Source of the DNA: Blastocladiella emersonii ATCC 22665
Lineage: Eukaryota; Fungi; Blastocladiomycota
Direction of reading: 5' to 3'
Length of the DNA: 20,409 nt
NCBI GenBank assembly: GCA_025594325.1
Contig: JANHCV010000021.1
Location: 1 to 20,409 of the forward strand
The notes beneath the pieces are model-generated. The model worked only from the letters and a program-made list of their open reading frames with translations. It searched no databases and was not told the origin of the DNA. Both the position numbers and the translations under genes were made by a program. Within the stretch, counting starts at the first letter, position 1. Each line of letters begins with the position of its first letter. Below are positions 1-20,409 of this stretch, one piece after another.

Positions 1-51
1 AATCGCAGCAAGCGAAGGGAATCAGTTTGATCAACGATCGTCAATCGCAGA

Positions 52-125
52 GGTCCCATAGCTCAGTTGGTTAGAGCGTGGTGCTAATAACGCCAAGGCC
101 GACGGTTCGACCCCGTCTGGGACCA
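52..125 (+). tRNA. trnI: tRNA-Ile(AAT)
   Basis: Acceptor GGTCCCA/TGGGACC+A; anticodon arm TGGTG-CT AAT AA-CGCCA; T-loop TTCGACC; T6 at 129-134. Confidence 0.97.
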
Positions 126-248
126 CTCTTTTTTCCTCCTCGCTCATCAGCACCGATCCTTGACGAGAATCTTCAGCGCTCGCTCGAGCCGCTTCGTGAT
201 TGATTACCTGGCTTGTACGCGCAAGAGCGCAAGCAGCAAAATGAAAAA

Positions 249-322
249 CGCTCTTGGGTGGACTCGAACCACCATCCTTTCGATTAACAGTCGAACGCGC
301 TAACCAATTGCGCCACAAGAGC
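249..322 (-). tRNA. trnN: tRNA-Asn(GTT)
   Basis: Minus strand GCTCTTG/CAAGAGC+G; arm TTCGA-CT GTT AA-TCGAA; T5 (A244-248). Confidence 0.97.
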
Positions 323-401
323 TCGCAGTAAGCTGCGGAAAGCTCAGCTTCGTTCGCCGCGAAAGCCGATCATCCAGACCAACTACTCGAGCTGATTCAA
401 T

Positions 402-474
402 GCGGAGTTGGCTCAGTCGGCAGAGCGTAGGTCTCATAATCCTAAGGTCGGGAGTTCGAGTCTCCCACTCCGCA
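402..474 (+). tRNA. trnM: elongator tRNA-Met(CAT)
   Basis: GCGGAGT/ACTCCGC+A; arm TAGGT-CT CAT AA-TCCTA with the U31-U39 pair typical of eukaryotic elongator Met; normal TTCGA T-loop; T5 at 481-485. Confidence 0.96.
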
Positions 475-567
475 TCATCCTTTTTGCTCGCGCGCGCCTT
501 GGATCAGTCGATCCTCGCGTAGAATCACACTCAACATCGCCGCGAGACCGCTCTGAGCAGCAAAAAA

Positions 568-649
568 CGACAACGACAGGATTTGAACCTGTGCAGGCAG
601 AGCCTAATTGATTTCTAGTCAATCCCCTTAACCACTCGGGCACGTTGTC
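568..649 (-). tRNA. trnS: tRNA-Ser(AGA)
   Basis: Minus strand GACAACG/CGTTGTC+G; arm ATTGA-CT AGA AA-TCAAT; long variable arm; T6 (A562-567). Confidence 0.97.
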
Positions 650-762
650 TTACACGCGGACACGCAACGGTCGATCAAGTTGCGCGAGCAAGAAAGCGAG
701 CGAGTCGATTGCGTTTGTTGCCGTAGCGGTTGGTGATCGATCGTACACGCTCAGAAATCGAT

Positions 763-845
763 GGGGAGATGGCCGAGTCGGTCTAAGGCGTCACGTTAAG
801 GCCGTGATCTCTTCGGAGGCGTGGGTTCGAATCCCACTCTCCTCA
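763..845 (+). tRNA. trnL: tRNA-Leu(AAG)
   Basis: GGGGAGA/TCTCCTC+A; arm TCACG-TT AAG GC-CGTGA; variable arm CTC-TTCG-GAG; T7 at 850-856. Confidence 0.97.
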
Positions 846-921
846 TCCCTTTTTTTCCCTCTCGCGAAGCATCTGGCTCGCGAGGGACGATCGTGAAGAT
901 AGACGCGCATCGGAGAAGCAA

Positions 922-993
922 GGCTCGATGGTCTAGTGGTATGATTCTCCCTTAGGGTGGGAGAGGTCCCGGGTTCAATCCCCGGTCGAGCCC
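922..993 (+). tRNA. trnP: tRNA-Pro(AGG)
   Basis: GGCTCGA/TCGAGCC+C (eukaryotic C73); arm CTCCC-TT AGG GT-GGGAG; T6 at 997-1002. Confidence 0.97.
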
Positions 994-1092
994 TTCTTTT
1001 TCTCGCTCGCTGTGAGCGGGACGAGCCTTTTGCGTCGCGTACAGCGCAAGAAAAAGGTGATCGACTCGAACTCGTCGCAGCAAAACGCGCTG

Positions 1093-1164
1093 CTCCGCAT
1101 CGGGGATTCGAACCCCGGCCACCTCGGTGAAAGCGAGGGATCCTGACCACTGGACCAATGCGGA
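1093..1164 (-). tRNA. trnE: tRNA-Glu(TTC)
   Basis: Minus strand TCCGCAT/ATGCGGA+G; arm CCTCG-CT TTC AC-CGAGG; T4 (A1082-1085). Confidence 0.96.
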
Positions 1165-1222
1165 TCTCGATGTGCGAGCGACTTGGAGGTCGAGAGCGAC
1201 CCGAGTACATGTAAACTTTGAT

Positions 1223-1304
1223 GTTCAGGTGGCCGAGCGGTCTAAGGCGCTAGTTTCAGGTACTAGTCTCTTCGGAGGCGAGGGTTCGAATCCCTTCCTG
1301 GACA
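1223..1304 (+). tRNA. trnL: tRNA-Leu(CAG)
   Basis: GTTCAGG/CCTGGAC+A; arm CTAGT-TT CAG GT-ACTAG; long variable arm; T4 at 1309-1312. Confidence 0.97.
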
Positions 1305-1589
1305 TTCGTTTTGCTCCCTCGCGCACAGCGCAAGCAGCGAAGCGTACACAGCTCGAGTCGGCGCACACGCTGCTGTGTCGCGAGGGCGGCTCCGATCGAG
1401 CTCTTTTTTCTCCAGAATGTAGTCGACAGTATGCTCGCTCCATGCTGAAAGCCCGAGCCTCATCGCTCTCATACAGCGCGAGTAATATGCGATCACCGAG
1501 GCCGCGGCGCACGATCGCCTCACGTCTCAAAGTCCAGCTCAAACTAGCGCAACAGCTCAAGGACAGTGTCGGCTCTACTTCACGCTCAC

Positions 1590-1984
1590 ACGGCCCTGGG
1601 TTCGATCCTGCTTGTTAGCGCATTTGCGAGTACCTTCGGATTTACTTTCACACTCAATCCGGGTCCGTTTGAGCTCGTACTCGAGTATGTTACATTGCTA
1701 TCTATTCTGGAGCTCCCGTATTAATCAAAAATTGATTGGGGCGATTTTGCTCCCGCACCACGTCTTGAGAGCCAAGAGGTCGCGGGTTCCATACCTGCCA
1801 CTTGCATTTGCATTTGTTTTACACGGGGCCGAGACACAAAACTCGGATTGCTCCCAAACTTTAACAGGGATCGTTATATGACGCGTGGACCTCAGAAAAT
1901 AATTTGCGCCTTTATTCCATTTATACAGCTCGAGTTGCGAGTGAGACGGAGTCGGGTCGCGGGTTCGATCCTGAGTGTGGTCAC
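1590..1984 (+). pseudogene. three degenerate tRNA-derived 3'-half (B-box/T-arm) remnants
   Basis: GGGTTCGATCCTG at 1598-1610 and 1961-1973; GGTCGCGGGTTC at 1778-1789 and 1955-1966; 1763-1798 folds as stem TCTTG/CAAGA + GGTC + T-arm GCGGG-TTCCATA-CCTGC; no 5' halves found. Confidence 0.5.
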
Positions 1985-2149
1985 TTGGTCGCTTTAGCTG
2001 GTCGACCGAGCGTATTAAATTGCAAAGCCATTTCTCAACGGATCTTTGATCTGTAAGTTGCATCATGTGTTCCTCTTTTACTCTGATTATATAAAAGTAA
2101 CAGATCGGCAAAGCATTGACAGATGCGAAAGCTCGGATGCACTGTCGAT

Positions 2150-2580
2150 TCCGGCGCTAGAGAACAGCTAGGCAGACGCCCTTGCACACGCAGGTTGGGG
2201 CACGTCACTGAACAAGATCAAAGGCAACAGATCCGCAAAAGCTGCAAAACTCAGGTCGCGACAGCGGTCCGTCCGACCCGGATCGACCCGAACCATTTTC
2301 CGCTACAAGGACGCTAGACAGAAGGCACTTCACATGGATGTTGGAGCACCTTGTTAGCTACGATTAGAAGCAACAGAATCAAAAAAGCTGTAAAACTCAT
2401 GTCGTGGGAGCGGTTCGACCGACCCGGATCGACCCGACCCCCAGTGCGCTACAGACATGCTAGACCAAAGGCGCTCCACATGAATGTTGGGGCACCTTGT
2501 TGATAATGATCAAGAGCAACAGATCCCAGAAAGCTGCAAAACTCATGTCACGGCACCGCCCCGACCGACCCGCACTCGAG
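2150..2580. repeat. 146-bp degenerate tandem subrepeat (two full copies plus partial flanking copies)
   Basis: GCAACAGA...AAAGCTG.AAAACTCA at 2224, 2370 and 2516; copies 2224-2369 and 2370-2515 align without gaps at ~76% identity by hand count. Confidence 0.9.
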
Positions 2581-2736
2581 TCGGTCCCCCGACATGGTCT
2601 CTTAAGATTTTTTCAATCTGTTGACTGCAATTGCTGCGGGAACTTAGCGCAAGCTTAAGTTTAGGAGGGCGCGCGAAAGCATTGAAGGATGCACCCGAGC
2701 GCACGTTTACGCACTCGAACACGTTCAAGTCGAGAG

Positions 2737-3086
2737 TTGACCCTGTTGCCGTCGGGATCATGCAAATCTGTTGACGCCATGCAACTCAGAATCACTGTAG
2801 CTATCCATTGATATCTGAGGCGTCATGATAGCCCAACGGGAAGGGGTCGAAATCGTGACACCGCGAGCAAAACTTTGGTGTCGCGCGGACTCGAACCGGT
2901 CGGGTCAATATTTGACCATGTTGCCGTCGGAATGATGCGAATCTGTTGACGCCATGCAACGCAGAATCGTTTTGCCTATCCATAGAGGTCTTAAGTGTCG
3001 CGAGAGTCGGTCGGGAACCTGGTGAAAAAGTGACGTTCTTTGGTCTCGGCGGGGGACTTGGCGAAATCGCGACCGATCGGCTGACT
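2737..3086. repeat. 175-bp degenerate tandem duplication
   Basis: 2737-2793 vs 2912-2968 match at 52/57; weaker colinear similarity continues downstream. Confidence 0.85.
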
Positions 3087-3263
3087 ACACTGTGCGCCGA
3101 GTCCCCCTTGGGGCGGGTCGCTTTTCGGTCTCCTTTGCCTCGAAACCGGCACCATCCTAGGCAATATATCACGGGGAACACGATGGTATCAACAGATTTC
3201 GCATAGGTCGGCTCTGAGGGGGTCAAAATCAAGTCTCGAGAAAAGAAAAGGGTAAAAAATGTT

Positions 3264-3336
3264 TACCCAGTGTGGGGCTCGAACCCACGACATTGAGATT
3301 AAGAGTCTCACGCTCTACCGACTGAGCTAACCGGGC
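3264..3336 (-). tRNA. trnK: tRNA-Lys(CTT)
   Basis: Minus strand GCCCGGT/ACTGGGT+A; arm TGAGA-CT CTT AA-TCTCA; T6 (A3254-3259). Confidence 0.97.
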
Positions 3337-3753
3337 TTGATATTCTACTCGAGCAATCACTTCATCTTGCGTTCCTGGCTGGACTTGAGCGTGGCGATCG
3401 GAGCTCGCGCTGGAGATCGTGGATGAGCGGGGGAGCACGCACGCGGCAGCTCGGCGATCACTAGCATCGCGCGCTCACTCTTCTTGCCGCTCGGATCGCT
3501 CACTGGTGCTCGCTTCACTTGTAAACGCCACGTTCGCTGCGTAGCGTTTGTCTCTCACTGTGGAGCGCCACAGTGATCTGGCGAGTGTGTTCGATCAACG
3601 AGCTTGTAGATGGACCGTCTCGGATGCTCAATGAGCGGTGGTGCTCGAACTGGAGCGGTACAGGTCGAGATACGGGCGAGCAAAGGTACGCGGGTCGATC
3701 AGCGCGGTTTGCGACTTGGCTTACTGTACGGCAGGTCGGCCCCGGACATCGAG

Positions 3754-3824
3754 GCATAGTTGGTTTAGTGGTATAATTACCGCCTGCCACGCGGTAGACC
3801 CGGGTTCGATTCCCGGACTATGCA
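3754..3824 (+). tRNA. trnG: tRNA-Gly(GCC)
   Basis: GCATAGT/ACTATGC+A; arm ACCGC-CT GCC AC-GCGGT; T5 at 3829-3833. Confidence 0.97.
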
Positions 3825-3887
3825 TCACTTTTTGCCCTTGAACTCGCCTCGCGCTCCGACCTTTTCGACCCCTTGCGACCGCATCCT

Positions 3888-4375
3888 TTACTCTTTTGCG
3901 AATCTGTCGACGCTACCCATGCGCTCGGGTCCTAGCGCATCCGTGTAGTCGAGTTTGGTGGCCTGAATCGACAAAAAGTTGCACGCGGTCCTTGCTGACC
4001 AGGTCCGCGCTAACCACTTGCAAATCTTGCAAGCGTTTGATGGTCTCTTGGGCGATGCCGACAACCTTGCGCACAATCGACGCGCACCACCGACTAGTTT
4101 GACTATGCGGGAGCTCGCGTTCAACAGATCCATGTGGCGTGCGCAAATGGGTGATCAAGGGCAGCGAGCGCGCTCCGATCCTGCACTTTGTGCGCTTGCG
4201 TCGCGAAGAGACGCGCGAACACGCCGATTCCACGTCGAGGCGGTCGATGATACTCTTGGGTCAGCATGTGTTGCGCGGCGGGCGGATCGCAATGATACTG
4301 GTCGAGTAATGAGCGGATGATCGACTCGAACACGCCTGCGGCGGGTCCTGTAGCGAGGACGCTCTCCAAAATTTC
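3888..4375 (-). pseudogene. possible decayed protein-coding fragment, unidentified
   Basis: Stop-free minus-strand frame 3913-4260 rich in G/C-ending codons (..IVRKVVGIAQETIKRLQDLQVVSADLVSKDRVQLFVD..) with an in-register antisense open frame 3979-4320; no family recognised. Confidence 0.25.
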
Positions 4376-4376
4376 A

Positions 4377-4450
4377 GTCTTCGTGGTGTAGTTGGTTATC
4401 ACGTCTGTCTAACACACAGACGGTCTCCAGTTCGAACCTGGACGAAGACA
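4377..4450 (+). tRNA. trnV: tRNA-Val(AAC)
   Basis: GTCTTCG/CGAAGAC+A; arm TCTGT-CT AAC AC-ACAGA; T6 at 4454-4459. Confidence 0.97.
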
Positions 4451-4534
4451 CTCTTTTTTCTCCTCGAGCTCGCTCGCTTTTCTCGCTACGCAAGTGCCGC
4501 GAGATCAGGATGCAGATCAAGAGACACAGAAGCA

Positions 4535-4606
4535 TCCCAATTGGTCCAGTGGTTAGGATCTCACGCTCTCACCGTGATGGCCGGGGTTCGATTCCCCGAT
4601 TGGGAG
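4535..4606 (+). tRNA. trnE: tRNA-Glu(CTC)
   Basis: TCCCAAT/ATTGGGA+G; arm TCACG-CT CTC AC-CGTGA; T4 at 4620-4623. Confidence 0.97.
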
Positions 4607-4749
4607 GAGTTTATTCTTCTTTTGCTCTCGCTCGCTTTTGCTCCGCGTCGTCGCGAGTGGCTCAGCCATAATACGGCGTTGTATTACGCTGTCTCGATGG
4701 CAAAACGAGCGAGTCGAGCGTGTGGCTCGCGCGCGAGAAGGAAAAAAAG

Positions 4750-4822
4750 TGGAGAATCGGGGTATCGATCCCCGTGCCTCTCGCATGCTAAGCGAGCGCT
4801 CTACCATTTGAGCTAATCCCCC
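4750..4822 (-). tRNA. trnA: tRNA-Ala(AGC)
   Basis: Minus strand GGGGGAT/ATTCTCC+A with G3:U70; arm CTCGC-TT AGC AT-GCGAG; eukaryote-type A54 T-loop ATCGATA; T7 (A4742-4748). Confidence 0.97.
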
Positions 4823-5193
4823 ATACTTTTAGACGGTGCAGCGAGCCTCAGATCGCCGAGCTCGGTTGCGGACTTGAACCGCGCGTTTCGCCATGTTCCC
4901 TTGGGCGGATCGACTCGCGCTTTCAGTATCACGCGTAGCACCACTGGATGCATGTCTCCTCCGAGTTACAGCTCAATCGGCTGCTTGGTGCGTGAGGGGC
5001 GATGTGCGTTGTCCAGGAGCGCTGCATCGTCTGCTGCTCACTCATGCAAGCGCGCGACCCGCTCTCGCGACGCGTTATACTGCGCGACGAAGCGGTCGAC
5101 ACGCTAGAGCGGTCACTCAGTTGAGAGCTAGTGCGTACGCGATGTAAAAGAGGAGAGAGCGAGCGGCTCTCGATCGAGAAGAATAATAAAAAG

Positions 5194-5266
5194 TGTCACC
5201 TCCGTGGATTGAACACGGGACCTTTAGATCTTCAGTCTAACGCTCTCCCAACTGAGCTAAGGTGAC
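5194..5266 (-). tRNA. trnF: tRNA-Phe(GAA)
   Basis: Minus strand GTCACCT/AGGTGAC+A; arm TTAGA-CT GAA GA-TCTAA; T5 (A5188-5192). Confidence 0.97.
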
Positions 5267-5380
5267 GTGAATGATCAAGATCGCAACGCGTGGTGACTCT
5301 CACCGCCGTGGCGAAGCTTTAATCGGATCAGGCAGCTCGGGTCGAGGCGATATAGCAGCGCGCTGTTGCTCTATCATCAT

Positions 5381-5463
5381 CCGACCATAGCTCAGTTGGT
5401 AGAGCGGAAGACTGTAGTGATATGGATATCTTTAGGTCCCTGGTTCGAATCCGGGTGGTCGGA
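5381..5463 (+). tRNA. trnY: tRNA-Tyr(GTA) with 10-nt intron (5418-5427)
   Basis: CCGACCA/TGGTCGG+A (eukaryotic C1-G72); arm GAAGA-CT GTA G[tgatatggat]A-TCTTT; canonical 37/38 intron position; T5 at 5469-5473. Confidence 0.96.
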
Positions 5464-5673
5464 CACTCTTTTTGCCTTGAGCACGCATCGAATGATCGAT
5501 CACACGCGTGACGCAGCGCACGCTCGTTTTGCAGCTGCGTTGGAGCGAGCCGAATCGACTGAGTCGCTCCCTCGCGCGCGTTCAAGTCTCCTGAAGCGCG
5601 CGTAGCAGCACGCTCGATCAGCAGCATTATTATCAGAGAGGATCGAGTAGCGCAGTTGCTTCGTACGATTGTA

Positions 5674-5746
5674 GCCTTCTTAGCTCAGTTGGCAGAGCGT
5701 CCGCCTAGTAAGCGGAAGGTCAGCAGTTCAAATCTGCTAGGAGGCA
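5674..5746 (+). tRNA. trnT: tRNA-Thr(AGT)
   Basis: GCCTTCT/AGGAGGC+A; arm TCCGC-CT AGT AA-GCGGA; T4 at 5747-5750 and T5 at 5753-5757. Confidence 0.97.
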
Positions 5747-5808
5747 TTTTGATTTTTCGTTTTGCGATCGAGCGGCAATAGATGAAACGCAGCGCGAGCA
5801 AAAAGGAG

Positions 5809-5880
5809 CTCTCCGGCCGGGAATCGAACCCGGGCCGCGTGCGTGACAGGCACGAATACTAACCACTATACTACCGGAGA
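5809..5880 (-). tRNA. trnD: tRNA-Asp(GTC)
   Basis: Minus strand TCTCCGG/CCGGAGA+G; arm CGTGC-CT GTC AC-GCACG; T5 (A5800-5804). Confidence 0.97.
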
Positions 5881-6290
5881 CCTTGATTTGTTACGGCTGC
5901 TGCAGTACAGGTACTCGCCGCCAGCTCGAGCCGACTTGCGCGAGCGATTACTCGAGACTCACGCAAGCAATCGACCTGATCTCGCGGATACCAGCTGCTC
6001 TCATGCTAGTCGAGAGCTATGCAAAGTCTCGCGCCGATCCGACGAGTCAATTCGTGTGAACGCGCTGTGCACGATTCGCGCGACGCAGCACTCATACGCG
6101 ATCAGCTGGTGTAGCGGGACGCCGATTCCAGCGCGGGCACATGCTTTCGACTCTGTAGCATCCATGGCGCGCCGCCGTTGCGCGAGATCTGCGGCAGAGT
6201 CCCGCGCAAAGCTGCTCGTCGCGACGCTCAAGTCAAAGTCCCTCGATTCGCGACGCGGTACCTGGGCGCTGTGCAGCCCGTCACATCGTT

Positions 6291-6363
6291 GGACCTATGG
6301 CCAAATGGATAAGGCGCCTGACTACGGATCAGGAGATTCCAGGTTCGATCCCTGGTAGGTTCG
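6291..6363 (+). tRNA. trnR: tRNA-Arg(ACG)
   Basis: GGACCTA/TAGGTTC+G; arm CCTGA-CT ACG GA-TCAGG; T4 at 6365-6368. Confidence 0.97.
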
Positions 6364-6854
6364 CTTTTGCTTCCCTCGCTCGCTCGATCGTTTCTCCTTT
6401 TTGCTCCGCGAGTTCTCACTCGTTTCGCTCTCCACCTCGCCTGCGTGTTCTCTTCAGCATCTCGCTCATTCCTTGTGCGTGTGAAGCGGATCGGATGCAT
6501 CGTCTCGCTTGAGAGCAGAGTCGCGATCAGCTCACTGCATCGCGCAAGTACAGCGGACGCAGCTCGACCCGCATGAAGCGTTGCGTTCAGCTCGGCAGCG
6601 GCGCGTGCTCGACGCACGCACCGCACCGCGCACGCGTCAGAGTCCAGCTCGCTCGCTCACGCTCCGCTCCGCGTCGCGCTTCGCGCGCTCGTACCTCCCC
6701 CTCCAGAAATACAAAATTTCCCGCTTCTGAGACCACCAGCGCGTAGCGCAAGCTCCGGAGAGTACGCTGGCAGTGATTGCGGGCGGATTCGTGAGCGCGA
6801 GTCGATCGCAGCAAGCGAAGGGAATCAGTTTGATCAACGATCGTCAATCGCAGA

Positions 6855-6928
6855 GGTCCCATAGCTCAGTTGGTTAGAGCGTGGTGCTAATAACGCCAAG
6901 GCCGACGGTTCGACCCCGTCTGGGACCA
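6855..6928 (+). tRNA. trnI: tRNA-Ile(AAT), copy 2
   Basis: Copy of 52-125 (+6803). Confidence 0.97.
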
Positions 6929-7051
6929 CTCTTTTTTCCTCCTCGCTCATCAGCACCGATCCTTGACGAGAATCTTCAGCGCTCGCTCGAGCCGCTTCGT
7001 GATTGATTACCTGGCTTGTACGCGCAAGAGCGCAAGCAGCAAAATGAAAAA

Positions 7052-7125
7052 CGCTCTTGGGTGGACTCGAACCACCATCCTTTCGATTAACAGTCGAACG
7101 CGCTAACCAATTGCGCCACAAGAGC
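7052..7125 (-). tRNA. trnN: tRNA-Asn(GTT), copy 2
   Basis: Copy of 249-322 (+6803). Confidence 0.97.
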
Positions 7126-7204
7126 TCGCAGTAAGCTGCGGAAAGCTCAGCTTCGTTCGCCGCGAAAGCCGATCATCCAGACCAACTACTCGAGCTGATT
7201 CAAT

Positions 7205-7277
7205 GCGGAGTTGGCTCAGTCGGCAGAGCGTAGGTCTCATAATCCTAAGGTCGGGAGTTCGAGTCTCCCACTCCGCA
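7205..7277 (+). tRNA. trnM: elongator tRNA-Met(CAT), copy 2
   Basis: Copy of 402-474 (+6803). Confidence 0.96.
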
Positions 7278-7370
7278 TCATCCTTTTTGCTCGCGCGCGC
7301 CTTGGATCAGTCGATCCTCGCGTAGAATCACACTCAACATCGCCGCGAGACCGCTCTGAGCAGCAAAAAA

Positions 7371-7452
7371 CGACAACGACAGGATTTGAACCTGTGCAGG
7401 CAGAGCCTAATTGATTTCTAGTCAATCCCCTTAACCACTCGGGCACGTTGTC
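7371..7452 (-). tRNA. trnS: tRNA-Ser(AGA), copy 2
   Basis: Copy of 568-649 (+6803). Confidence 0.97.
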
Positions 7453-7565
7453 TTACACGCGGACACGCAACGGTCGATCAAGTTGCGCGAGCAAGAAAGC
7501 GAGCGAGTCGATTGCGTTTGTTGCCGTAGCGGTTGGTGATCGATCGTACACGCTCAGAAATCGAT

Positions 7566-7648
7566 GGGGAGATGGCCGAGTCGGTCTAAGGCGTCACGTT
7601 AAGGCCGTGATCTCTTCGGAGGCGTGGGTTCGAATCCCACTCTCCTCA
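7566..7648 (+). tRNA. trnL: tRNA-Leu(AAG), copy 2
   Basis: Copy of 763-845 (+6803). Confidence 0.97.
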
Positions 7649-7724
7649 TCCCTTTTTTTCCCTCTCGCGAAGCATCTGGCTCGCGAGGGACGATCGTGAA
7701 GATAGACGCGCATCGGAGAAGCAA

Positions 7725-7796
7725 GGCTCGATGGTCTAGTGGTATGATTCTCCCTTAGGGTGGGAGAGGTCCCGGGTTCAATCCCCGGTCGAGCCC
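7725..7796 (+). tRNA. trnP: tRNA-Pro(AGG), copy 2
   Basis: Copy of 922-993 (+6803). Confidence 0.97.
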
Positions 7797-7895
7797 TTCT
7801 TTTTCTCGCTCGCTGTGAGCGGGACGAGCCTTTTGCGTCGCGTACAGCGCAAGAAAAAGGTGATCGACTCGAACTCGTCGCAGCAAAACGCGCTG

Positions 7896-7967
7896 CTCCG
7901 CATCGGGGATTCGAACCCCGGCCACCTCGGTGAAAGCGAGGGATCCTGACCACTGGACCAATGCGGA
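7896..7967 (-). tRNA. trnE: tRNA-Glu(TTC), copy 2
   Basis: Copy of 1093-1164 (+6803). Confidence 0.96.
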
Positions 7968-8025
7968 TCTCGATGTGCGAGCGACTTGGAGGTCGAGAGC
8001 GACCCGAGTACATGTAAACTTTGAT

Positions 8026-8107
8026 GTTCAGGTGGCCGAGCGGTCTAAGGCGCTAGTTTCAGGTACTAGTCTCTTCGGAGGCGAGGGTTCGAATCCCTTC
8101 CTGGACA
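8026..8107 (+). tRNA. trnL: tRNA-Leu(CAG), copy 2
   Basis: Copy of 1223-1304 (+6803). Confidence 0.97.
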
Positions 8108-12069: not shown

Positions 12070-12183
12070 GTGAATGATCAAGATCGCAACGCGTGGTGAC
12101 TCTCACCGCCGTGGCGAAGCTTTAATCGGATCAGGCAGCTCGGGTCGAGGCGATATAGCAGCGCGCTGTTGCTCTATCATCAT

Positions 12184-12266: not shown

Positions 12267-12476
12267 CACTCTTTTTGCCTTGAGCACGCATCGAATGATC
12301 GATCACACGCGTGACGCAGCGCACGCTCGTTTTGCAGCTGCGTTGGAGCGAGCCGAATCGACTGAGTCGCTCCCTCGCGCGCGTTCAAGTCTCCTGAAGC
12401 GCGCGTAGCAGCACGCTCGATCAGCAGCATTATTATCAGAGAGGATCGAGTAGCGCAGTTGCTTCGTACGATTGTA

Positions 12477-12549
12477 GCCTTCTTAGCTCAGTTGGCAGAG
12501 CGTCCGCCTAGTAAGCGGAAGGTCAGCAGTTCAAATCTGCTAGGAGGCA
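12477..12549 (+). tRNA. trnT: tRNA-Thr(AGT), copy 2
   Basis: Copy of 5674-5746 (+6803). Confidence 0.97.
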
Positions 12550-12611
12550 TTTTGATTTTTCGTTTTGCGATCGAGCGGCAATAGATGAAACGCAGCGCGA
12601 GCAAAAAGGAG

Positions 12612-12683
12612 CTCTCCGGCCGGGAATCGAACCCGGGCCGCGTGCGTGACAGGCACGAATACTAACCACTATACTACCGGAGA
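12612..12683 (-). tRNA. trnD: tRNA-Asp(GTC), copy 2
   Basis: Copy of 5809-5880 (+6803). Confidence 0.97.
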
Positions 12684-13093
12684 CCTTGATTTGTTACGGC
12701 TGCTGCAGTACAGGTACTCGCCGCCAGCTCGAGCCGACTTGCGCGAGCGATTACTCGAGACTCACGCAAGCAATCGACCTGATCTCGCGGATACCAGCTG
12801 CTCTCATGCTAGTCGAGAGCTATGCAAAGTCTCGCGCCGATCCGACGAGTCAATTCGTGTGAACGCGCTGTGCACGATTCGCGCGACGCAGCACTCATAC
12901 GCGATCAGCTGGTGTAGCGGGACGCCGATTCCAGCGCGGGCACATGCTTTCGACTCTGTAGCATCCATGGCGCGCCGCCGTTGCGCGAGATCTGCGGCAG
13001 AGTCCCGCGCAAAGCTGCTCGTCGCGACGCTCAAGTCAAAGTCCCTCGATTCGCGACGCGGTACCTGGGCGCTGTGCAGCCCGTCACATCGTT

Positions 13094-13166
13094 GGACCTA
13101 TGGCCAAATGGATAAGGCGCCTGACTACGGATCAGGAGATTCCAGGTTCGATCCCTGGTAGGTTCG
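13094..13166 (+). tRNA. trnR: tRNA-Arg(ACG), copy 2
   Basis: Copy of 6291-6363 (+6803). Confidence 0.97.
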
Positions 13167-13657
13167 CTTTTGCTTCCCTCGCTCGCTCGATCGTTTCTCC
13201 TTTTTGCTCCGCGAGTTCTCACTCGTTTCGCTCTCCACCTCGCCTGCGTGTTCTCTTCAGCATCTCGCTCATTCCTTGTGCGTGTGAAGCGGATCGGATG
13301 CATCGTCTCGCTTGAGAGCAGAGTCGCGATCAGCTCACTGCATCGCGCAAGTACAGCGGACGCAGCTCGACCCGCATGAAGCGTTGCGTTCAGCTCGGCA
13401 GCGGCGCGTGCTCGACGCACGCACCGCACCGCGCACGCGTCAGAGTCCAGCTCGCTCGCTCACGCTCCGCTCCGCGTCGCGCTTCGCGCGCTCGTACCTC
13501 CCCCTCCAGAAATACAAAATTTCCCGCTTCTGAGACCACCAGCGCGTAGCGCAAGCTCCGGAGAGTACGCTGGCAGTGATTGCGGGCGGATTCGTGAGCG
13601 CGAGTCGATCGCAGCAAGCGAAGGGAATCAGTTTGATCAACGATCGTCAATCGCAGA

Positions 13658-13731
13658 GGTCCCATAGCTCAGTTGGTTAGAGCGTGGTGCTAATAACGCC
13701 AAGGCCGACGGTTCGACCCCGTCTGGGACCA
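13658..13731 (+). tRNA. trnI: tRNA-Ile(AAT), copy 3
   Basis: Copy of 52-125 (+13606). Confidence 0.97.
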
Positions 13732-13854
13732 CTCTTTTTTCCTCCTCGCTCATCAGCACCGATCCTTGACGAGAATCTTCAGCGCTCGCTCGAGCCGCTT
13801 CGTGATTGATTACCTGGCTTGTACGCGCAAGAGCGCAAGCAGCAAAATGAAAAA

Positions 13855-13928
13855 CGCTCTTGGGTGGACTCGAACCACCATCCTTTCGATTAACAGTCGA
13901 ACGCGCTAACCAATTGCGCCACAAGAGC
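13855..13928 (-). tRNA. trnN: tRNA-Asn(GTT), copy 3
   Basis: Copy of 249-322 (+13606). Confidence 0.97.
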
Positions 13929-14007
13929 TCGCAGTAAGCTGCGGAAAGCTCAGCTTCGTTCGCCGCGAAAGCCGATCATCCAGACCAACTACTCGAGCTG
14001 ATTCAAT

Positions 14008-14080
14008 GCGGAGTTGGCTCAGTCGGCAGAGCGTAGGTCTCATAATCCTAAGGTCGGGAGTTCGAGTCTCCCACTCCGCA
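14008..14080 (+). tRNA. trnM: elongator tRNA-Met(CAT), copy 3
   Basis: Copy of 402-474 (+13606). Confidence 0.96.
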
Positions 14081-14173
14081 TCATCCTTTTTGCTCGCGCG
14101 CGCCTTGGATCAGTCGATCCTCGCGTAGAATCACACTCAACATCGCCGCGAGACCGCTCTGAGCAGCAAAAAA

Positions 14174-14255
14174 CGACAACGACAGGATTTGAACCTGTGC
14201 AGGCAGAGCCTAATTGATTTCTAGTCAATCCCCTTAACCACTCGGGCACGTTGTC
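14174..14255 (-). tRNA. trnS: tRNA-Ser(AGA), copy 3
   Basis: Copy of 568-649 (+13606). Confidence 0.97.
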
Positions 14256-14368
14256 TTACACGCGGACACGCAACGGTCGATCAAGTTGCGCGAGCAAGAA
14301 AGCGAGCGAGTCGATTGCGTTTGTTGCCGTAGCGGTTGGTGATCGATCGTACACGCTCAGAAATCGAT

Positions 14369-14451
14369 GGGGAGATGGCCGAGTCGGTCTAAGGCGTCAC
14401 GTTAAGGCCGTGATCTCTTCGGAGGCGTGGGTTCGAATCCCACTCTCCTCA
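14369..14451 (+). tRNA. trnL: tRNA-Leu(AAG), copy 3
   Basis: Copy of 763-845 (+13606). Confidence 0.97.
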
Positions 14452-14527
14452 TCCCTTTTTTTCCCTCTCGCGAAGCATCTGGCTCGCGAGGGACGATCGT
14501 GAAGATAGACGCGCATCGGAGAAGCAA

Positions 14528-14599
14528 GGCTCGATGGTCTAGTGGTATGATTCTCCCTTAGGGTGGGAGAGGTCCCGGGTTCAATCCCCGGTCGAGCCC
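14528..14599 (+). tRNA. trnP: tRNA-Pro(AGG), copy 3
   Basis: Copy of 922-993 (+13606). Confidence 0.97.
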
Positions 14600-14698
14600 T
14601 TCTTTTTCTCGCTCGCTGTGAGCGGGACGAGCCTTTTGCGTCGCGTACAGCGCAAGAAAAAGGTGATCGACTCGAACTCGTCGCAGCAAAACGCGCTG

Positions 14699-14770
14699 CT
14701 CCGCATCGGGGATTCGAACCCCGGCCACCTCGGTGAAAGCGAGGGATCCTGACCACTGGACCAATGCGGA
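14699..14770 (-). tRNA. trnE: tRNA-Glu(TTC), copy 3
   Basis: Copy of 1093-1164 (+13606). Confidence 0.96.
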
Positions 14771-14828
14771 TCTCGATGTGCGAGCGACTTGGAGGTCGAG
14801 AGCGACCCGAGTACATGTAAACTTTGAT

Positions 14829-14910
14829 GTTCAGGTGGCCGAGCGGTCTAAGGCGCTAGTTTCAGGTACTAGTCTCTTCGGAGGCGAGGGTTCGAATCCC
14901 TTCCTGGACA
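14829..14910 (+). tRNA. trnL: tRNA-Leu(CAG), copy 3
   Basis: Copy of 1223-1304 (+13606). Confidence 0.97.
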
Positions 14911-15195
14911 TTCGTTTTGCTCCCTCGCGCACAGCGCAAGCAGCGAAGCGTACACAGCTCGAGTCGGCGCACACGCTGCTGTGTCGCGAGGGCGGCTCCG
15001 ATCGAGCTCTTTTTTCTCCAGAATGTAGTCGACAGTATGCTCGCTCCATGCTGAAAGCCCGAGCCTCATCGCTCTCATACAGCGCGAGTAATATGCGATC
15101 ACCGAGGCCGCGGCGCACGATCGCCTCACGTCTCAAAGTCCAGCTCAAACTAGCGCAACAGCTCAAGGACAGTGTCGGCTCTACTTCACGCTCAC

Positions 15196-15590
15196 ACGGC
15201 CCTGGGTTCGATCCTGCTTGTTAGCGCATTTGCGAGTACCTTCGGATTTACTTTCACACTCAATCCGGGTCCGTTTGAGCTCGTACTCGAGTATGTTACA
15301 TTGCTATCTATTCTGGAGCTCCCGTATTAATCAAAAATTGATTGGGGCGATTTTGCTCCCGCACCACGTCTTGAGAGCCAAGAGGTCGCGGGTTCCATAC
15401 CTGCCACTTGCATTTGCATTTGTTTTACACGGGGCCGAGACACAAAACTCGGATTGCTCCCAAACTTTAACAGGGATCGTTATATGACGCGTGGACCTCA
15501 GAAAATAATTTGCGCCTTTATTCCATTTATACAGCTCGAGTTGCGAGTGAGACGGAGTCGGGTCGCGGGTTCGATCCTGAGTGTGGTCAC
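15196..15590 (+). pseudogene. tRNA-derived B-box remnants, copy 3
   Basis: Copy of 1590-1984 (+13606). Confidence 0.5.
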
Positions 15591-15755
15591 TTGGTCGCTT
15601 TAGCTGGTCGACCGAGCGTATTAAATTGCAAAGCCATTTCTCAACGGATCTTTGATCTGTAAGTTGCATCATGTGTTCCTCTTTTACTCTGATTATATAA
15701 AAGTAACAGATCGGCAAAGCATTGACAGATGCGAAAGCTCGGATGCACTGTCGAT

Positions 15756-16186
15756 TCCGGCGCTAGAGAACAGCTAGGCAGACGCCCTTGCACACGCAGG
15801 TTGGGGCACGTCACTGAACAAGATCAAAGGCAACAGATCCGCAAAAGCTGCAAAACTCAGGTCGCGACAGCGGTCCGTCCGACCCGGATCGACCCGAACC
15901 ATTTTCCGCTACAAGGACGCTAGACAGAAGGCACTTCACATGGATGTTGGAGCACCTTGTTAGCTACGATTAGAAGCAACAGAATCAAAAAAGCTGTAAA
16001 ACTCATGTCGTGGGAGCGGTTCGACCGACCCGGATCGACCCGACCCCCAGTGCGCTACAGACATGCTAGACCAAAGGCGCTCCACATGAATGTTGGGGCA
16101 CCTTGTTGATAATGATCAAGAGCAACAGATCCCAGAAAGCTGCAAAACTCATGTCACGGCACCGCCCCGACCGACCCGCACTCGAG
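15756..16186. repeat. 146-bp degenerate subrepeat, copy 3
   Basis: Copy of 2150-2580 (+13606). Confidence 0.9.
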
Positions 16187-16342
16187 TCGGTCCCCCGACA
16201 TGGTCTCTTAAGATTTTTTCAATCTGTTGACTGCAATTGCTGCGGGAACTTAGCGCAAGCTTAAGTTTAGGAGGGCGCGCGAAAGCATTGAAGGATGCAC
16301 CCGAGCGCACGTTTACGCACTCGAACACGTTCAAGTCGAGAG

Positions 16343-16692
16343 TTGACCCTGTTGCCGTCGGGATCATGCAAATCTGTTGACGCCATGCAACTCAGAATCA
16401 CTGTAGCTATCCATTGATATCTGAGGCGTCATGATAGCCCAACGGGAAGGGGTCGAAATCGTGACACCGCGAGCAAAACTTTGGTGTCGCGCGGACTCGA
16501 ACCGGTCGGGTCAATATTTGACCATGTTGCCGTCGGAATGATGCGAATCTGTTGACGCCATGCAACGCAGAATCGTTTTGCCTATCCATAGAGGTCTTAA
16601 GTGTCGCGAGAGTCGGTCGGGAACCTGGTGAAAAAGTGACGTTCTTTGGTCTCGGCGGGGGACTTGGCGAAATCGCGACCGATCGGCTGACT
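16343..16692. repeat. 175-bp degenerate duplication, copy 3
   Basis: Copy of 2737-3086 (+13606). Confidence 0.85.
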
Positions 16693-16869
16693 ACACTGTG
16701 CGCCGAGTCCCCCTTGGGGCGGGTCGCTTTTCGGTCTCCTTTGCCTCGAAACCGGCACCATCCTAGGCAATATATCACGGGGAACACGATGGTATCAACA
16801 GATTTCGCATAGGTCGGCTCTGAGGGGGTCAAAATCAAGTCTCGAGAAAAGAAAAGGGTAAAAAATGTT

Positions 16870-16942
16870 TACCCAGTGTGGGGCTCGAACCCACGACATT
16901 GAGATTAAGAGTCTCACGCTCTACCGACTGAGCTAACCGGGC
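16870..16942 (-). tRNA. trnK: tRNA-Lys(CTT), copy 3
   Basis: Copy of 3264-3336 (+13606). Confidence 0.97.
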
Positions 16943-17359
16943 TTGATATTCTACTCGAGCAATCACTTCATCTTGCGTTCCTGGCTGGACTTGAGCGTGG
17001 CGATCGGAGCTCGCGCTGGAGATCGTGGATGAGCGGGGGAGCACGCACGCGGCAGCTCGGCGATCACTAGCATCGCGCGCTCACTCTTCTTGCCGCTCGG
17101 ATCGCTCACTGGTGCTCGCTTCACTTGTAAACGCCACGTTCGCTGCGTAGCGTTTGTCTCTCACTGTGGAGCGCCACAGTGATCTGGCGAGTGTGTTCGA
17201 TCAACGAGCTTGTAGATGGACCGTCTCGGATGCTCAATGAGCGGTGGTGCTCGAACTGGAGCGGTACAGGTCGAGATACGGGCGAGCAAAGGTACGCGGG
17301 TCGATCAGCGCGGTTTGCGACTTGGCTTACTGTACGGCAGGTCGGCCCCGGACATCGAG

Positions 17360-17430
17360 GCATAGTTGGTTTAGTGGTATAATTACCGCCTGCCACGCGG
17401 TAGACCCGGGTTCGATTCCCGGACTATGCA
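17360..17430 (+). tRNA. trnG: tRNA-Gly(GCC), copy 3
   Basis: Copy of 3754-3824 (+13606). Confidence 0.97.
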
Positions 17431-17982
17431 TCACTTTTTGCCCTTGAACTCGCCTCGCGCTCCGACCTTTTCGACCCCTTGCGACCGCATCCTTTACTCT
17501 TTTGCGAATCTGTCGACGCTACCCATGCGCTCGGGTCCTAGCGCATCCGTGTAGTCGAGTTTGGTGGCCTGAATCGACAAAAAGTTGCACGCGGTCCTTG
17601 CTGACCAGGTCCGCGCTAACCACTTGCAAATCTTGCAAGCGTTTGATGGTCTCTTGGGCGATGCCGACAACCTTGCGCACAATCGACGCGCACCACCGAC
17701 TAGTTTGACTATGCGGGAGCTCGCGTTCAACAGATCCATGTGGCGTGCGCAAATGGGTGATCAAGGGCAGCGAGCGCGCTCCGATCCTGCACTTTGTGCG
17801 CTTGCGTCGCGAAGAGACGCGCGAACACGCCGATTCCACGTCGAGGCGGTCGATGATACTCTTGGGTCAGCATGTGTTGCGCGGCGGGCGGATCGCAATG
17901 ATACTGGTCGAGTAATGAGCGGATGATCGACTCGAACACGCCTGCGGCGGGTCCTGTAGCGAGGACGCTCTCCAAAATTTCA

Positions 17983-18056
17983 GTCTTCGTGGTGTAGTTG
18001 GTTATCACGTCTGTCTAACACACAGACGGTCTCCAGTTCGAACCTGGACGAAGACA
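17983..18056 (+). tRNA. trnV: tRNA-Val(AAC), copy 3
   Basis: Copy of 4377-4450 (+13606). Confidence 0.97.
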
Positions 18057-18140
18057 CTCTTTTTTCTCCTCGAGCTCGCTCGCTTTTCTCGCTACGCAAG
18101 TGCCGCGAGATCAGGATGCAGATCAAGAGACACAGAAGCA

Positions 18141-18212
18141 TCCCAATTGGTCCAGTGGTTAGGATCTCACGCTCTCACCGTGATGGCCGGGGTTCGATTC
18201 CCCGATTGGGAG
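18141..18212 (+). tRNA. trnE: tRNA-Glu(CTC), copy 3
   Basis: Copy of 4535-4606 (+13606). Confidence 0.97.
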
Positions 18213-18355
18213 GAGTTTATTCTTCTTTTGCTCTCGCTCGCTTTTGCTCCGCGTCGTCGCGAGTGGCTCAGCCATAATACGGCGTTGTATTACGCTGTCT
18301 CGATGGCAAAACGAGCGAGTCGAGCGTGTGGCTCGCGCGCGAGAAGGAAAAAAAG

Positions 18356-18428
18356 TGGAGAATCGGGGTATCGATCCCCGTGCCTCTCGCATGCTAAGCG
18401 AGCGCTCTACCATTTGAGCTAATCCCCC
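18356..18428 (-). tRNA. trnA: tRNA-Ala(AGC), copy 3
   Basis: Copy of 4750-4822 (+13606). Confidence 0.97.
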
Positions 18429-18799
18429 ATACTTTTAGACGGTGCAGCGAGCCTCAGATCGCCGAGCTCGGTTGCGGACTTGAACCGCGCGTTTCGCCAT
18501 GTTCCCTTGGGCGGATCGACTCGCGCTTTCAGTATCACGCGTAGCACCACTGGATGCATGTCTCCTCCGAGTTACAGCTCAATCGGCTGCTTGGTGCGTG
18601 AGGGGCGATGTGCGTTGTCCAGGAGCGCTGCATCGTCTGCTGCTCACTCATGCAAGCGCGCGACCCGCTCTCGCGACGCGTTATACTGCGCGACGAAGCG
18701 GTCGACACGCTAGAGCGGTCACTCAGTTGAGAGCTAGTGCGTACGCGATGTAAAAGAGGAGAGAGCGAGCGGCTCTCGATCGAGAAGAATAATAAAAAG

Positions 18800-18872
18800 T
18801 GTCACCTCCGTGGATTGAACACGGGACCTTTAGATCTTCAGTCTAACGCTCTCCCAACTGAGCTAAGGTGAC
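18800..18872 (-). tRNA. trnF: tRNA-Phe(GAA), copy 3
   Basis: Copy of 5194-5266 (+13606). Confidence 0.97.
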
Positions 18873-18986
18873 GTGAATGATCAAGATCGCAACGCGTGGT
18901 GACTCTCACCGCCGTGGCGAAGCTTTAATCGGATCAGGCAGCTCGGGTCGAGGCGATATAGCAGCGCGCTGTTGCTCTATCATCAT

Positions 18987-19069
18987 CCGACCATAGCTCA
19001 GTTGGTAGAGCGGAAGACTGTAGTGATATGGATATCTTTAGGTCCCTGGTTCGAATCCGGGTGGTCGGA
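18987..19069 (+). tRNA. trnY: tRNA-Tyr(GTA) with intron, copy 3
   Basis: Copy of 5381-5463 (+13606). Confidence 0.96.
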
Positions 19070-19279
19070 CACTCTTTTTGCCTTGAGCACGCATCGAATG
19101 ATCGATCACACGCGTGACGCAGCGCACGCTCGTTTTGCAGCTGCGTTGGAGCGAGCCGAATCGACTGAGTCGCTCCCTCGCGCGCGTTCAAGTCTCCTGA
19201 AGCGCGCGTAGCAGCACGCTCGATCAGCAGCATTATTATCAGAGAGGATCGAGTAGCGCAGTTGCTTCGTACGATTGTA

Positions 19280-19352
19280 GCCTTCTTAGCTCAGTTGGCA
19301 GAGCGTCCGCCTAGTAAGCGGAAGGTCAGCAGTTCAAATCTGCTAGGAGGCA
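19280..19352 (+). tRNA. trnT: tRNA-Thr(AGT), copy 3
   Basis: Copy of 5674-5746 (+13606). Confidence 0.97.
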
Positions 19353-19414
19353 TTTTGATTTTTCGTTTTGCGATCGAGCGGCAATAGATGAAACGCAGCG
19401 CGAGCAAAAAGGAG

Positions 19415-19486
19415 CTCTCCGGCCGGGAATCGAACCCGGGCCGCGTGCGTGACAGGCACGAATACTAACCACTATACTACCGGAGA
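19415..19486 (-). tRNA. trnD: tRNA-Asp(GTC), copy 3
   Basis: Copy of 5809-5880 (+13606). Confidence 0.97.
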
Positions 19487-19896
19487 CCTTGATTTGTTAC
19501 GGCTGCTGCAGTACAGGTACTCGCCGCCAGCTCGAGCCGACTTGCGCGAGCGATTACTCGAGACTCACGCAAGCAATCGACCTGATCTCGCGGATACCAG
19601 CTGCTCTCATGCTAGTCGAGAGCTATGCAAAGTCTCGCGCCGATCCGACGAGTCAATTCGTGTGAACGCGCTGTGCACGATTCGCGCGACGCAGCACTCA
19701 TACGCGATCAGCTGGTGTAGCGGGACGCCGATTCCAGCGCGGGCACATGCTTTCGACTCTGTAGCATCCATGGCGCGCCGCCGTTGCGCGAGATCTGCGG
19801 CAGAGTCCCGCGCAAAGCTGCTCGTCGCGACGCTCAAGTCAAAGTCCCTCGATTCGCGACGCGGTACCTGGGCGCTGTGCAGCCCGTCACATCGTT

Positions 19897-19969
19897 GGAC
19901 CTATGGCCAAATGGATAAGGCGCCTGACTACGGATCAGGAGATTCCAGGTTCGATCCCTGGTAGGTTCG
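19897..19969 (+). tRNA. trnR: tRNA-Arg(ACG), copy 3
   Basis: Copy of 6291-6363 (+13606). Confidence 0.97.
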
Positions 19970-20409
19970 CTTTTGCTTCCCTCGCTCGCTCGATCGTTTC
20001 TCCTTTTTGCTCCGCGAGTTCTCACTCGTTTCGCTCTCCACCTCGCCTGCGTGTTCTCTTCAGCATCTCGCTCATTCCTTGTGCGTGTGAAGCGGATCGG
20101 ATGCATCGTCTCGCTTGAGAGCAGAGTCGCGATCAGCTCACTGCATCGCGCAAGTACAGCGGACGCAGCTCGACCCGCATGAAGCGTTGCGTTCAGCTCG
20201 GCAGCGGCGCGTGCTCGACGCACGCACCGCACCGCGCACGCGTCAGAGTCCAGCTCGCTCGCTCACGCTCCGCTCCGCGTCGCGCTTCGCGCGCTCGTAC
20301 CTCCCCCTCCAGAAATACAAAATTTCCCGCTTCTGAGACCACCAGCGCGTAGCGCAAGCTCCGGAGAGTACGCTGGCAGTGATTGCGGGCGGATTCGTGA
20401 GCGCGAGTC

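Follow-up and report, generated by a model that had tools for sequence, protein, structure and literature searches.

The 20,409-bp stretch of DNA analysed here (the window) carries a cassette of 18 different transfer RNA (tRNA) genes that is repeated three times head to tail. It is a real feature that belongs among the tandem tRNA arrays, new in the complexity of its unit, and it has homologues and analogues elsewhere. In a base-by-base self-comparison the length of the window was exactly 3 × 6,803 bp, with unit 1 at positions 1..6803, unit 2 at 6804..13606 and unit 3 at 13607..20409, where the stretch stops exactly on a unit boundary. All features recur at +6,803 and +13,606 and the tRNA coordinates have the same period; positions are given below for unit 1. 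Near-identity of the copies, a trait by which tandem arrays are recognised, was found throughout: units 2 and 3 are the same at all bases, and unit 1 departs from both at window position 1 only. The spacer that joins one unit to the next, from tRNA-Arg(ACG) to the following tRNA-Ile(AAT), was present twice (6364..6854 and 13167-13657), so the head-to-tail join can be read directly from the window. The GC content of the unit is 55%. The chance of the length being an exact multiple of the unit is ~1 in 6,803. The window thus resembles a closed assembly-graph path or a multimeric circle, and the number three therefore says nothing about the real copy number. The sole mismatch between the units (position 1 is a, positions 6804 and 13607 are g) looks like an effect of a contig end or of path closure and not like a biological variant.

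Each unit holds 18 intact, full-length tRNA genes with 18 different anticodons for 16 amino acids (leucine and glutamate are each represented twice); 11 genes are on the plus strand and 7 on the minus strand, and there is no Cys, Gln, His or Trp tRNA gene within the unit. tRNA sequence makes up 19.8% of the unit, and the density of 2.6 tRNA genes per kb is far beyond chance. ARAGORN in its default mode reported 17 tRNAs per unit (51 in total) and missed tRNA-Tyr(GTA) because this gene contains an intron. The 18th gene (5381-5463, plus strand) was supplied by the Rfam covariance model with 59.6 bits and was called as tRNA-Tyr(GTA) by the intron mode of ARAGORN. All 18 genes matched Rfam RF00005 over model positions 1-71 of 71, at 53-74 bits compared to a gathering score of 29. 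The original prediction had described 18 non-redundant, intact tRNA genes per 6,803-bp unit, each with its own terminator, plus one spacer containing subrepeats; ARAGORN, Rfam and the self-comparison bore out every one of these checkable details.

Judged by their sequence, the genes are of the eukaryotic nuclear type, and each is a separate predicted transcription unit of RNA polymerase III (Pol III). Eight of them have A34 anticodons (Ile-AAT, Ser-AGA, Leu-AAG, Pro-AGG, Val-AAC, Ala-AGC, Thr-AGT and Arg-ACG), and A34 is read as inosine in eukaryotes. With A34 for Ile and the four-codon boxes and G34 for two-codon boxes, the anticodon set is of the eukaryotic type. A run of T4-T7 begins 1-14 nucleotides (nt) past the 3' end in 18/18 genes, and CCA is encoded in 0/18. 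The A34 anticodons, the intron of tRNA-Tyr, the oligo-T run of each gene and the lack of encoded CCA together point to nuclear Pol III genes, and the presence of genes on both strands excludes one cassette-long transcript. The internal B-box (a GGTTCGANNCC-like T-arm) was also present: the pattern G(G)TTC[GA]ANNC was matched by 17 of the genes, and tRNA-Ala carries the variant GGATCGATACC. The positions -10 to -1 before the genes are 62% A+T versus 44% in the unit overall, which fits the context of a Pol III start site. Alongside a few C34 species, the anticodons make up the 'major' I34/G34 set, and it is four rare amino acids that lack a gene in the unit. A prokaryotic or phage tRNA array unit was ruled out by the A34 anticodons, the intron, the two-strand layout and the T-run of each gene. 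No match to the window was found in plasmids, and the tRNA-Lys and tRNA-Thr probes had no match in GTDB genomes or IMG/VR contigs.

As a separate observation, the pentamer CTCGC occurs within 40 nt past the terminator in 13 of the 18 genes (e.g. at 126-165, 475-514 and 846-885). By comparison, 16% of random 40-mers drawn from the unit contain it (binomial p = 2e-7), and among the upstream regions only 3/18 do. It could be a common post-terminator element, or a trace of a shared origin of the spacers.

The genes that precede the long spacer are, in order, tRNA-Ile(AAT) (52..125, plus strand, 66.6 bits in Rfam, T6 run 4 nt downstream), tRNA-Asn(GTT) (249..322, minus, 74.3 bits, T5 run at +1), tRNA-Met(CAT) (402..474, plus, 69.3 bits), tRNA-Ser(AGA) (568..649, minus, 60.4 bits), tRNA-Leu(AAG) (763..845, plus, 56.5 bits), tRNA-Pro(AGG) (922..993, plus, 53.5 bits), tRNA-Glu(TTC) (1093..1164, minus, 62.6 bits) and tRNA-Leu(CAG) (1223..1304, plus, 53.4 bits). 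The tRNA-Met is of the elongator type, as read from T54 in its TTCGAGT T-loop. The spacer is followed by tRNA-Lys(CTT) (3264..3336, minus, 69.2 bits), tRNA-Gly(GCC) (3754..3824, plus, 66.1 bits), tRNA-Val(AAC) (4377..4450, plus, 59.9 bits), tRNA-Glu(CTC) (4535..4606, plus, 60.8 bits), tRNA-Ala(AGC) with its variant T-loop (4750..4822, minus, 56.0 bits), tRNA-Phe(GAA) (5194..5266, minus, 67.7 bits), the intron-containing tRNA-Tyr(GTA), tRNA-Thr(AGT) (5674..5746, plus, 68.1 bits), tRNA-Asp(GTC) (5809..5880, minus, 62.0 bits) and tRNA-Arg(ACG) (6291..6363, plus, 62.6 bits). Apart from tRNA-Tyr, all were called by default ARAGORN as well as by Rfam. The intron of tRNA-Tyr is 10 nt long (5418..5427, plus strand) and is located at the canonical 37/38 position (i(38,10) in the intron mode). 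Rfam also reported matches to 'Plastid-ycf2 5'UTR' at 25-40 bits, antisense (minus strand) to the tRNAs at 52-126, 922-994 and 6291-6364; they are artefacts of tRNA-like structure and lie below the gathering score of that family (65.7).

The long spacer (1306..3263, 1,958 bp, 52% GC) contains internal subrepeats, a trait also seen in the intergenic spacers (IGS) of ribosomal DNA (rDNA). Repeat finding revealed a 146-bp subrepeat in 2.4 copies with 76% matches (2216..2572, D1/D2) and a 175-bp direct repeat in two copies with 74% identity (2722..3034, D3). The spacer gave no RNA-family match (Rfam, even at E<=10), protein-family match or homologue match. Ten spacer open reading frames (ORFs) had no Pfam match above noise, the most protein-like ORF had no homologue, and an exact look-up of the longest ORF returned no record. 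Scans for bacterial-type promoters and terminators in the spacer yielded counts at chance level. Of the defined elements of an rDNA IGS (origin, fork barrier, enhancers), none could be recognised, and there was no pronounced A+T-rich unwinding region beyond one 100-bp bin at 35% GC. A motif scan did find orphan B-box-like decamers, GGTTCGATCC on the plus strand at 1599..1608 with a second copy at 1962-1971, and GGTTCGAGTC on the minus strand at 2888-2897. Three such motifs were thus observed compared to 0.13 expected, and a further variant lies near 1785. Their flanks no longer fold as T-arms. The spacer also has 25 short matches to the unit's own tRNAs, compared to 7-19 in 20 shuffles. We read the orphan B-boxes and the short matches as probable remnants of decayed tRNA genes; alternatively, the motifs may be extra TFIIIC sites.

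Relatives of the cassette were found through a spurious ORF (794-1210, minus strand) that crosses tRNA-Leu(AAG), tRNA-Pro(AGG) and tRNA-Glu(TTC) and served as a gene-order probe in protein collections; the contigs encoding matches to it were then retrieved and compared. The most informative are L003 (NCBI assembly GCA_054403835.1) and L004 (a Logan contig from SRR20705920), which share 96% identity. L004 has a length of 5,847 bp and repeats its first 30 nt at its end (a k-1 overlap), giving a closed path of 5,817 bp. L003, from a separate assembly, crosses this closure with Gly, Lys and Glu-TTC, then spacer. The L004 unit has 18 tRNA genes as well, and 16 anticodon species are common to it and the window at 83-100% identity (the tRNA-Thr of the window is 100% identical to the copies in L003 and L004). 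Leu-CAG and Arg-ACG were found only in the window, Pro-CGG and Val-CAC only in L004. Order and orientation are kept between the two units in four blocks: Ile-Asn-Met, Ser-Leu(AAG)-Pro(AGG), Tyr-Thr-Asp and Lys-Gly. The intron-bearing Tyr gene of L003 and L004 was 96% identical to the tRNA-Tyr of the window in BLAST, intron included. The intron mode of ARAGORN labels this gene (L003:612-694 and L004:2993-3075) as 'Asp-GTC with intron'; given the BLAST identity and the Rfam score of 59.6 bits, this label is an annotation pitfall.

L004 also has exactly one long spacer, of 2,223 bp and with no Rfam match. The long spacers of the window and L004 have no sequence in common and no significant similarity, and so no spacer element of the kind that is conserved between related rDNA repeats was found in this pair: across these lineages the tRNAs alone are conserved and the spacers are not. 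When L003 is aligned with L004, 0.9% of tRNA positions and 5.2% of spacer positions are different (odds ratio 6.1, Fisher p = 7e-14). The tRNAs of the L003/L004 cassette are thus under purifying selection and are probably working genes. Within the window, the regions of Leu(AAG) (779-870) and Leu(CAG) (1238-1329) are 74% identical, and their similarity reaches ~25 nt into the 3' flanks (repeat family D5). This likeness, together with the lack of Leu(CAG) in L004, suggests that Leu(CAG) may stem from a Leu gene that was duplicated locally in the unit of the window and whose copy then changed its anticodon.

Fragments of three further lineages were recovered, which show the Lys-Glu(TTC)...Pro(AGG)-Leu(AAG) microsynteny and have tRNAs 92-100% identical to those of the window. 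The ENA metagenome contigs L001 and L002 (49% GC) carry Lys, Glu-TTC, Pro-AGG(-) and Leu-AAG(-); the Lys gene of L001 is 100% identical to that of the window over 74 nt. In the Logan contigs L006 and L007 (41% GC) this order is kept, the genes being spaced more widely, and Met is present in addition. The JGI metagenome contigs L009 and L010 (33% and 41% GC) carry Gly, Arg-ACG, Lys, Glu-TTC, Glu-CTC and Pro-AGG(-), with 92-99% identity to the tRNAs of the window. Lys and Glu-TTC adjoin in all four lineages (L003/L004, L001/L002, L006/L007 and L009/L010), whereas in the window Leu-CAG and the long spacer lie between them. Thus, the arrangement of the window is derived, or the repeat junction fell at this place. 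The synteny pattern Thr...Asp had no match in JGI metagenomes. The observed/expected ratio of CpG is 1.31 in the window and 0.43-0.78 in L001, L004, L006, L009 and L010, and the GC content ranges over 33-55%, so the clade is compositionally diverse. Relatives with near-identical tRNAs therefore differ strongly in base composition, and perhaps also in DNA methylation. Matches in named organisms were limited to overlaps with a single tRNA (Coelomomyces, L005, and Ramicandelaber), at most a faint pointer to early-diverging fungi. As to other taxa, an oomycete had come to mind from the GC content and the style of the sequence, but no evidence for it was found: the arrays of Phytophthora infestans have 1-3 genes per unit, and the GC content of relatives falls as low as 33%. 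Blastocystis, considered for the 41-55% GC spread, was dropped, as it has no backing in the sequence, its genome paper makes no mention of arrays of this kind, and relatives are present in JGI metagenomes. Two other matches were rejected as ordinary homogeneous arrays from other genomes, picked up because the probe ORF contains tRNA-Pro: L011:10014-11162, a Pro/Gln array with a ~180-nt period on a 2.1-Mb ENA contig, and L016:111-2503, with 16 Pro genes at a 153-nt period.

A more distant analogue came from the ocean. L012 (ENA ERZ907942, Tara Oceans, MEGAHIT contig k127_880801) is 6,910 bp long and begins and ends with the same 127 nt. This overlap equals k, so that the closed unit measures 6,783 bp. 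The closure is bridged at 99% identity by L013, a contig of a different Tara sample, and L015 shows a variant gene order. All 20 amino acids are served by the 42 tRNA genes of the L012 unit. One strand bears 40 of these genes, and the set is of the eukaryotic type, again with A34 anticodons and a Tyr gene that has an intron. It also bears a 5S rRNA gene (4065-4183), U2 (4311-4505) and U6 (1242-1346, minus strand). Its tRNAs are just 78-92% identical to those of the window, indicating a more distant eukaryote. Another Tara Oceans contig, L008 (ENA ERZ908262), has a dense cluster of 18 tRNA genes in 3 kb (L008:1-2992); its set (Cys, His, Gln, Leu-TAG and others) is unlike that of the window, and its identity to the tRNAs of the window is 69-90%. 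Self-closing multi-tRNA cassettes thus exist in at least three lineages (the window, L004 and L012), and each of these closed cassettes has one long tRNA-free stretch (1.96, 2.22 and 1.04 kb, respectively). The original prediction had suggested a search for syntenic cassettes in relatives, and such cassettes, or fragments of them, turned up in L003/L004, L001/L002, L006/L007 and L009/L010; the uniqueness that it implied for the window is weakened by the related and the analogous self-closing cassettes L004 and L012, which make the window one member of a wider pattern for which we found no description.

How could such a unit be organised and maintained? We consider it probable that the window represents a head-to-tail repeated nuclear block of 18 separate Pol III genes, with joint dosage and homogenised copies. 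The block would be a long chromosomal array of 6,803-bp units, presumably in high copy number. Each tRNA gene would be transcribed separately, with internal A and B boxes, the A+T-enriched 10 nt upstream and its own oligo-T run. The block would have descended from an older dense tRNA cluster common to related organisms, and the whole of it would have become repeated in the lineage of the window and in at least one other. The copies would be homogenised by unequal crossing-over and gene conversion, as are rDNA, 5S and the arrays of Entamoeba, and such concerted evolution would account for the zero differences between copies. The number of units would then set the joint gene dosage of the main (I34/G34-type) decoders for 16 amino acids. 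The long spacer most likely has no function and would be DNA that was carried along in the amplification or built up where the repeats join, with decayed tRNA remnants and local subrepeats in it; an origin of this kind would leave one long spacer per closed cassette, unrelated between lineages. The spacer pattern fits independent amplifications of an ancestral cluster, and it fits fast spacer turnover in an ancestral array equally.

Within this explanation, the reading of the cassette as a dosage module in the style of rDNA, put forward in the original prediction, is plausible. Several points weigh against the repeated nuclear block as a whole or in part. Three identical copies in exactly 3.000 units could be the closed path of an assembler. 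The zero differences between copies may be partly due to consensus polishing. The figures for constraint on the tRNAs come from the L003/L004 lineage and not from that of the window, whose three identical copies yield no such measure. Moreover, the 1:1 ratio of the 18 species misfits the unequal demand for tRNAs, which means that other tRNA genes must exist elsewhere and that the cassette alone cannot set the tRNA pool.

The cassette might instead be an extrachromosomal circular multicopy episome with the long spacer as its origin, the three copies being a multimer or a rolled-out 6.8-kb circle. rDNA circles exist as episomes in Entamoeba, Naegleria and Euglena. An episome would suit the exactly 3.000 units without unique flank in the stretch, the closure of L004 and L012 (by overlaps of k-1 and k) with independent contigs spanning both junctions, and the single long tRNA-free stretch in the window, L004 and L012. 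However, a chromosomal tandem array gives closure of the assembly graph equally, and the long spacers are unrelated between lineages, that of L012 being occupied by 5S and U2 with no obvious origin. Apart from the one 35% GC bin, no pronounced unwinding region stands out in the window, and the Pfam and homologue searches with the spacer ORFs revealed no replication or partition gene, although an origin defined by function only would escape these searches. All eukaryotic tRNA arrays that we found described in the literature are chromosomal. Taken together, we regard an episome as unlikely. We also asked whether the repeat could be an artefact of assembly or processing, in which the assembler, or a library chemistry of the rolling-circle or concatemer kind, triplicated one ordinary cluster (two copies at most). 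The exact unit multiple, the zero differences and the odd mismatch at base 1 do resemble software output more than a random slice of an array, and the relatives L001, L006, L009 and L010 were seen only as non-repeated fragments. Yet a single-copy cluster would assemble with unique flanks, the join from Arg to Ile needs a tandem duplication or a circle, and closure was found independently in two other lineages, with a contig of a different data set bearing it out in either case. Multicopy regions are, moreover, presumably what assembles from low-coverage eukaryotes in metagenomes. An artefact is therefore quite improbable.

Finally, the array could be real and mainly structural or regulatory, for instance as a boundary in chromatin that is bound by TFIIIC/Pol III, as a block of heterochromatin or at a chromosome end, or as a reserve that is kept largely silent. 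There are precedents in the human 1q23.3 boundary element, the silenced Arabidopsis SYY cluster and the proposed telomere substitute of Entamoeba, and the three orphan B-box-like motifs could be extra TFIIIC sites. But no orphan B-box was found in the long segments of L004 and L012, and the unit contains no telomere-like repeat. The 16 anticodon species kept in two lineages and the strong purifying selection on the tRNAs suit working genes better than sites for protein binding only, so that a mainly structural role appears very unlikely. Beyond the window, self-closing cassettes of small-RNA genes could be a widespread way, of which we found no description, in which some microbial eukaryotes hold their Pol III genes. 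Units of 6-7 kb, with anything between 18 tRNA species and a nearly full set (42 tRNAs for all 20 amino acids plus 5S, U2 and U6), would be kept as homogenised arrays or as multicopy circles that set translational capacity, the tRNA counterpart of rDNA episomes. We put this forward tentatively and consider it rather doubtful.

If the repeated nuclear block is as we propose, then with a unit of 18 species the gene dosage across most of the decoding set would become a single genetic trait that varies with copy number. It would offer a handle on how cells adjust their tRNA supply to codon usage and growth rate, and on whether this supply evolves by array expansion as that of rRNA does. The interest of the cassette would climb sharply if a high copy number or an extrachromosomal state were true. 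Such arrays collapse in assemblies or drop out of them, and the counts of tRNA genes for these organisms are thus probably wrong; in Phytophthora, tRNA gene counts were found to be wrong for such array-related reasons (PMC9584435).

How does the cassette compare with known systems? In the open-access full-text literature we found no description of a tandem unit with at least 18 tRNA species, and a 2010 survey of 74 eukaryotic genomes reported heterogeneous tRNA clusters and no unit of this kind. The tRNA sequences of the unit gave no match in the papers searched. The 3.18-kb tandem repeat of Xenopus laevis reportedly (Clarkson and co-workers, ~1980) has ~8 separately transcribed tRNA genes on both strands. 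It would thus resemble the window in having several tRNA species on both strands, and would differ in its fewer genes and in being from an animal. The Ser/Tyr (SYY) cluster of Arabidopsis is reported to be silenced in most tissues.

The literature agrees with the original prediction that described tandem tRNA units carry few species (at most 6 in Entamoeba, 5 in human and 1-3 in Phytophthora infestans). Entamoeba has 25 different small units, in which the number of tRNA genes is 1-5 and reaches 6 in one species (Clark et al. 2006; Tawari et al. 2008, PMC2652664); a role as a telomere substitute has been proposed for these arrays, and many copies may be inactive (PMC2652664). They resemble the window in their head-to-tail multi-tRNA units and near-uniform copies, and in that adjacency and orientation are conserved between species and intergenic sequence is not. 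In contrast to the window, they are A+T-rich, often contain microsatellite-like short tandem repeats and sometimes include a 5S gene (PMC2652664), whereas the window has a single 6.8-kb unit of 55% GC with 18 species, no such repeats and one 2-kb spacer. The human variable number tandem repeat at 1q23.3, implicated as a boundary element, has a GC-rich unit of 7.3 kb with 5 tRNA genes (Darrow & Chadwick 2014, PMC4041453). When this array is compared with that of mouse, only the tRNA genes are conserved, as between the window and L004, and genes lie on both strands. However, tRNA makes up <6% of the human unit, its copies are 98% identical, and it contains transposon fragments and a conserved CTCF site (PMC4041453). 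The unit of the window, by comparison, is 20% tRNA with its 18 genes, its copies show 100% identity, and apart from the tRNAs no conserved element turned up. In Phytophthora infestans, massive tandem amplification of tRNA genes with little divergence was attributed to unequal crossing-over; unlike in the window, these units are monomeric, dimeric or trimeric, with 1-3 genes (e.g. 513 nt and 850 nt; PMC9584435).

Outside tRNA arrays proper, the SL RNA-5S-U2 repeat of Diplonema papillatum, a non-coding RNA unit of three genes, was termed 'exceptional' (PMC10161547). The tRNA array units of bacteria, mycobacteriophages and archaea have at least 20 different tRNA genes at ~2 per kb or more (PMC4758250, PMC5966550). 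They are like the window in gene density and unlike it in being single-copy, co-oriented and operon-like. The arrays of rDNA and 5S, in turn, are homogenised tandem repeats of housekeeping RNA genes whose spacer can hold subrepeats, and in these respects they are like the window. In contrast, rDNA produces one Pol I transcript per unit and has an IGS with an origin, a fork barrier and enhancers.

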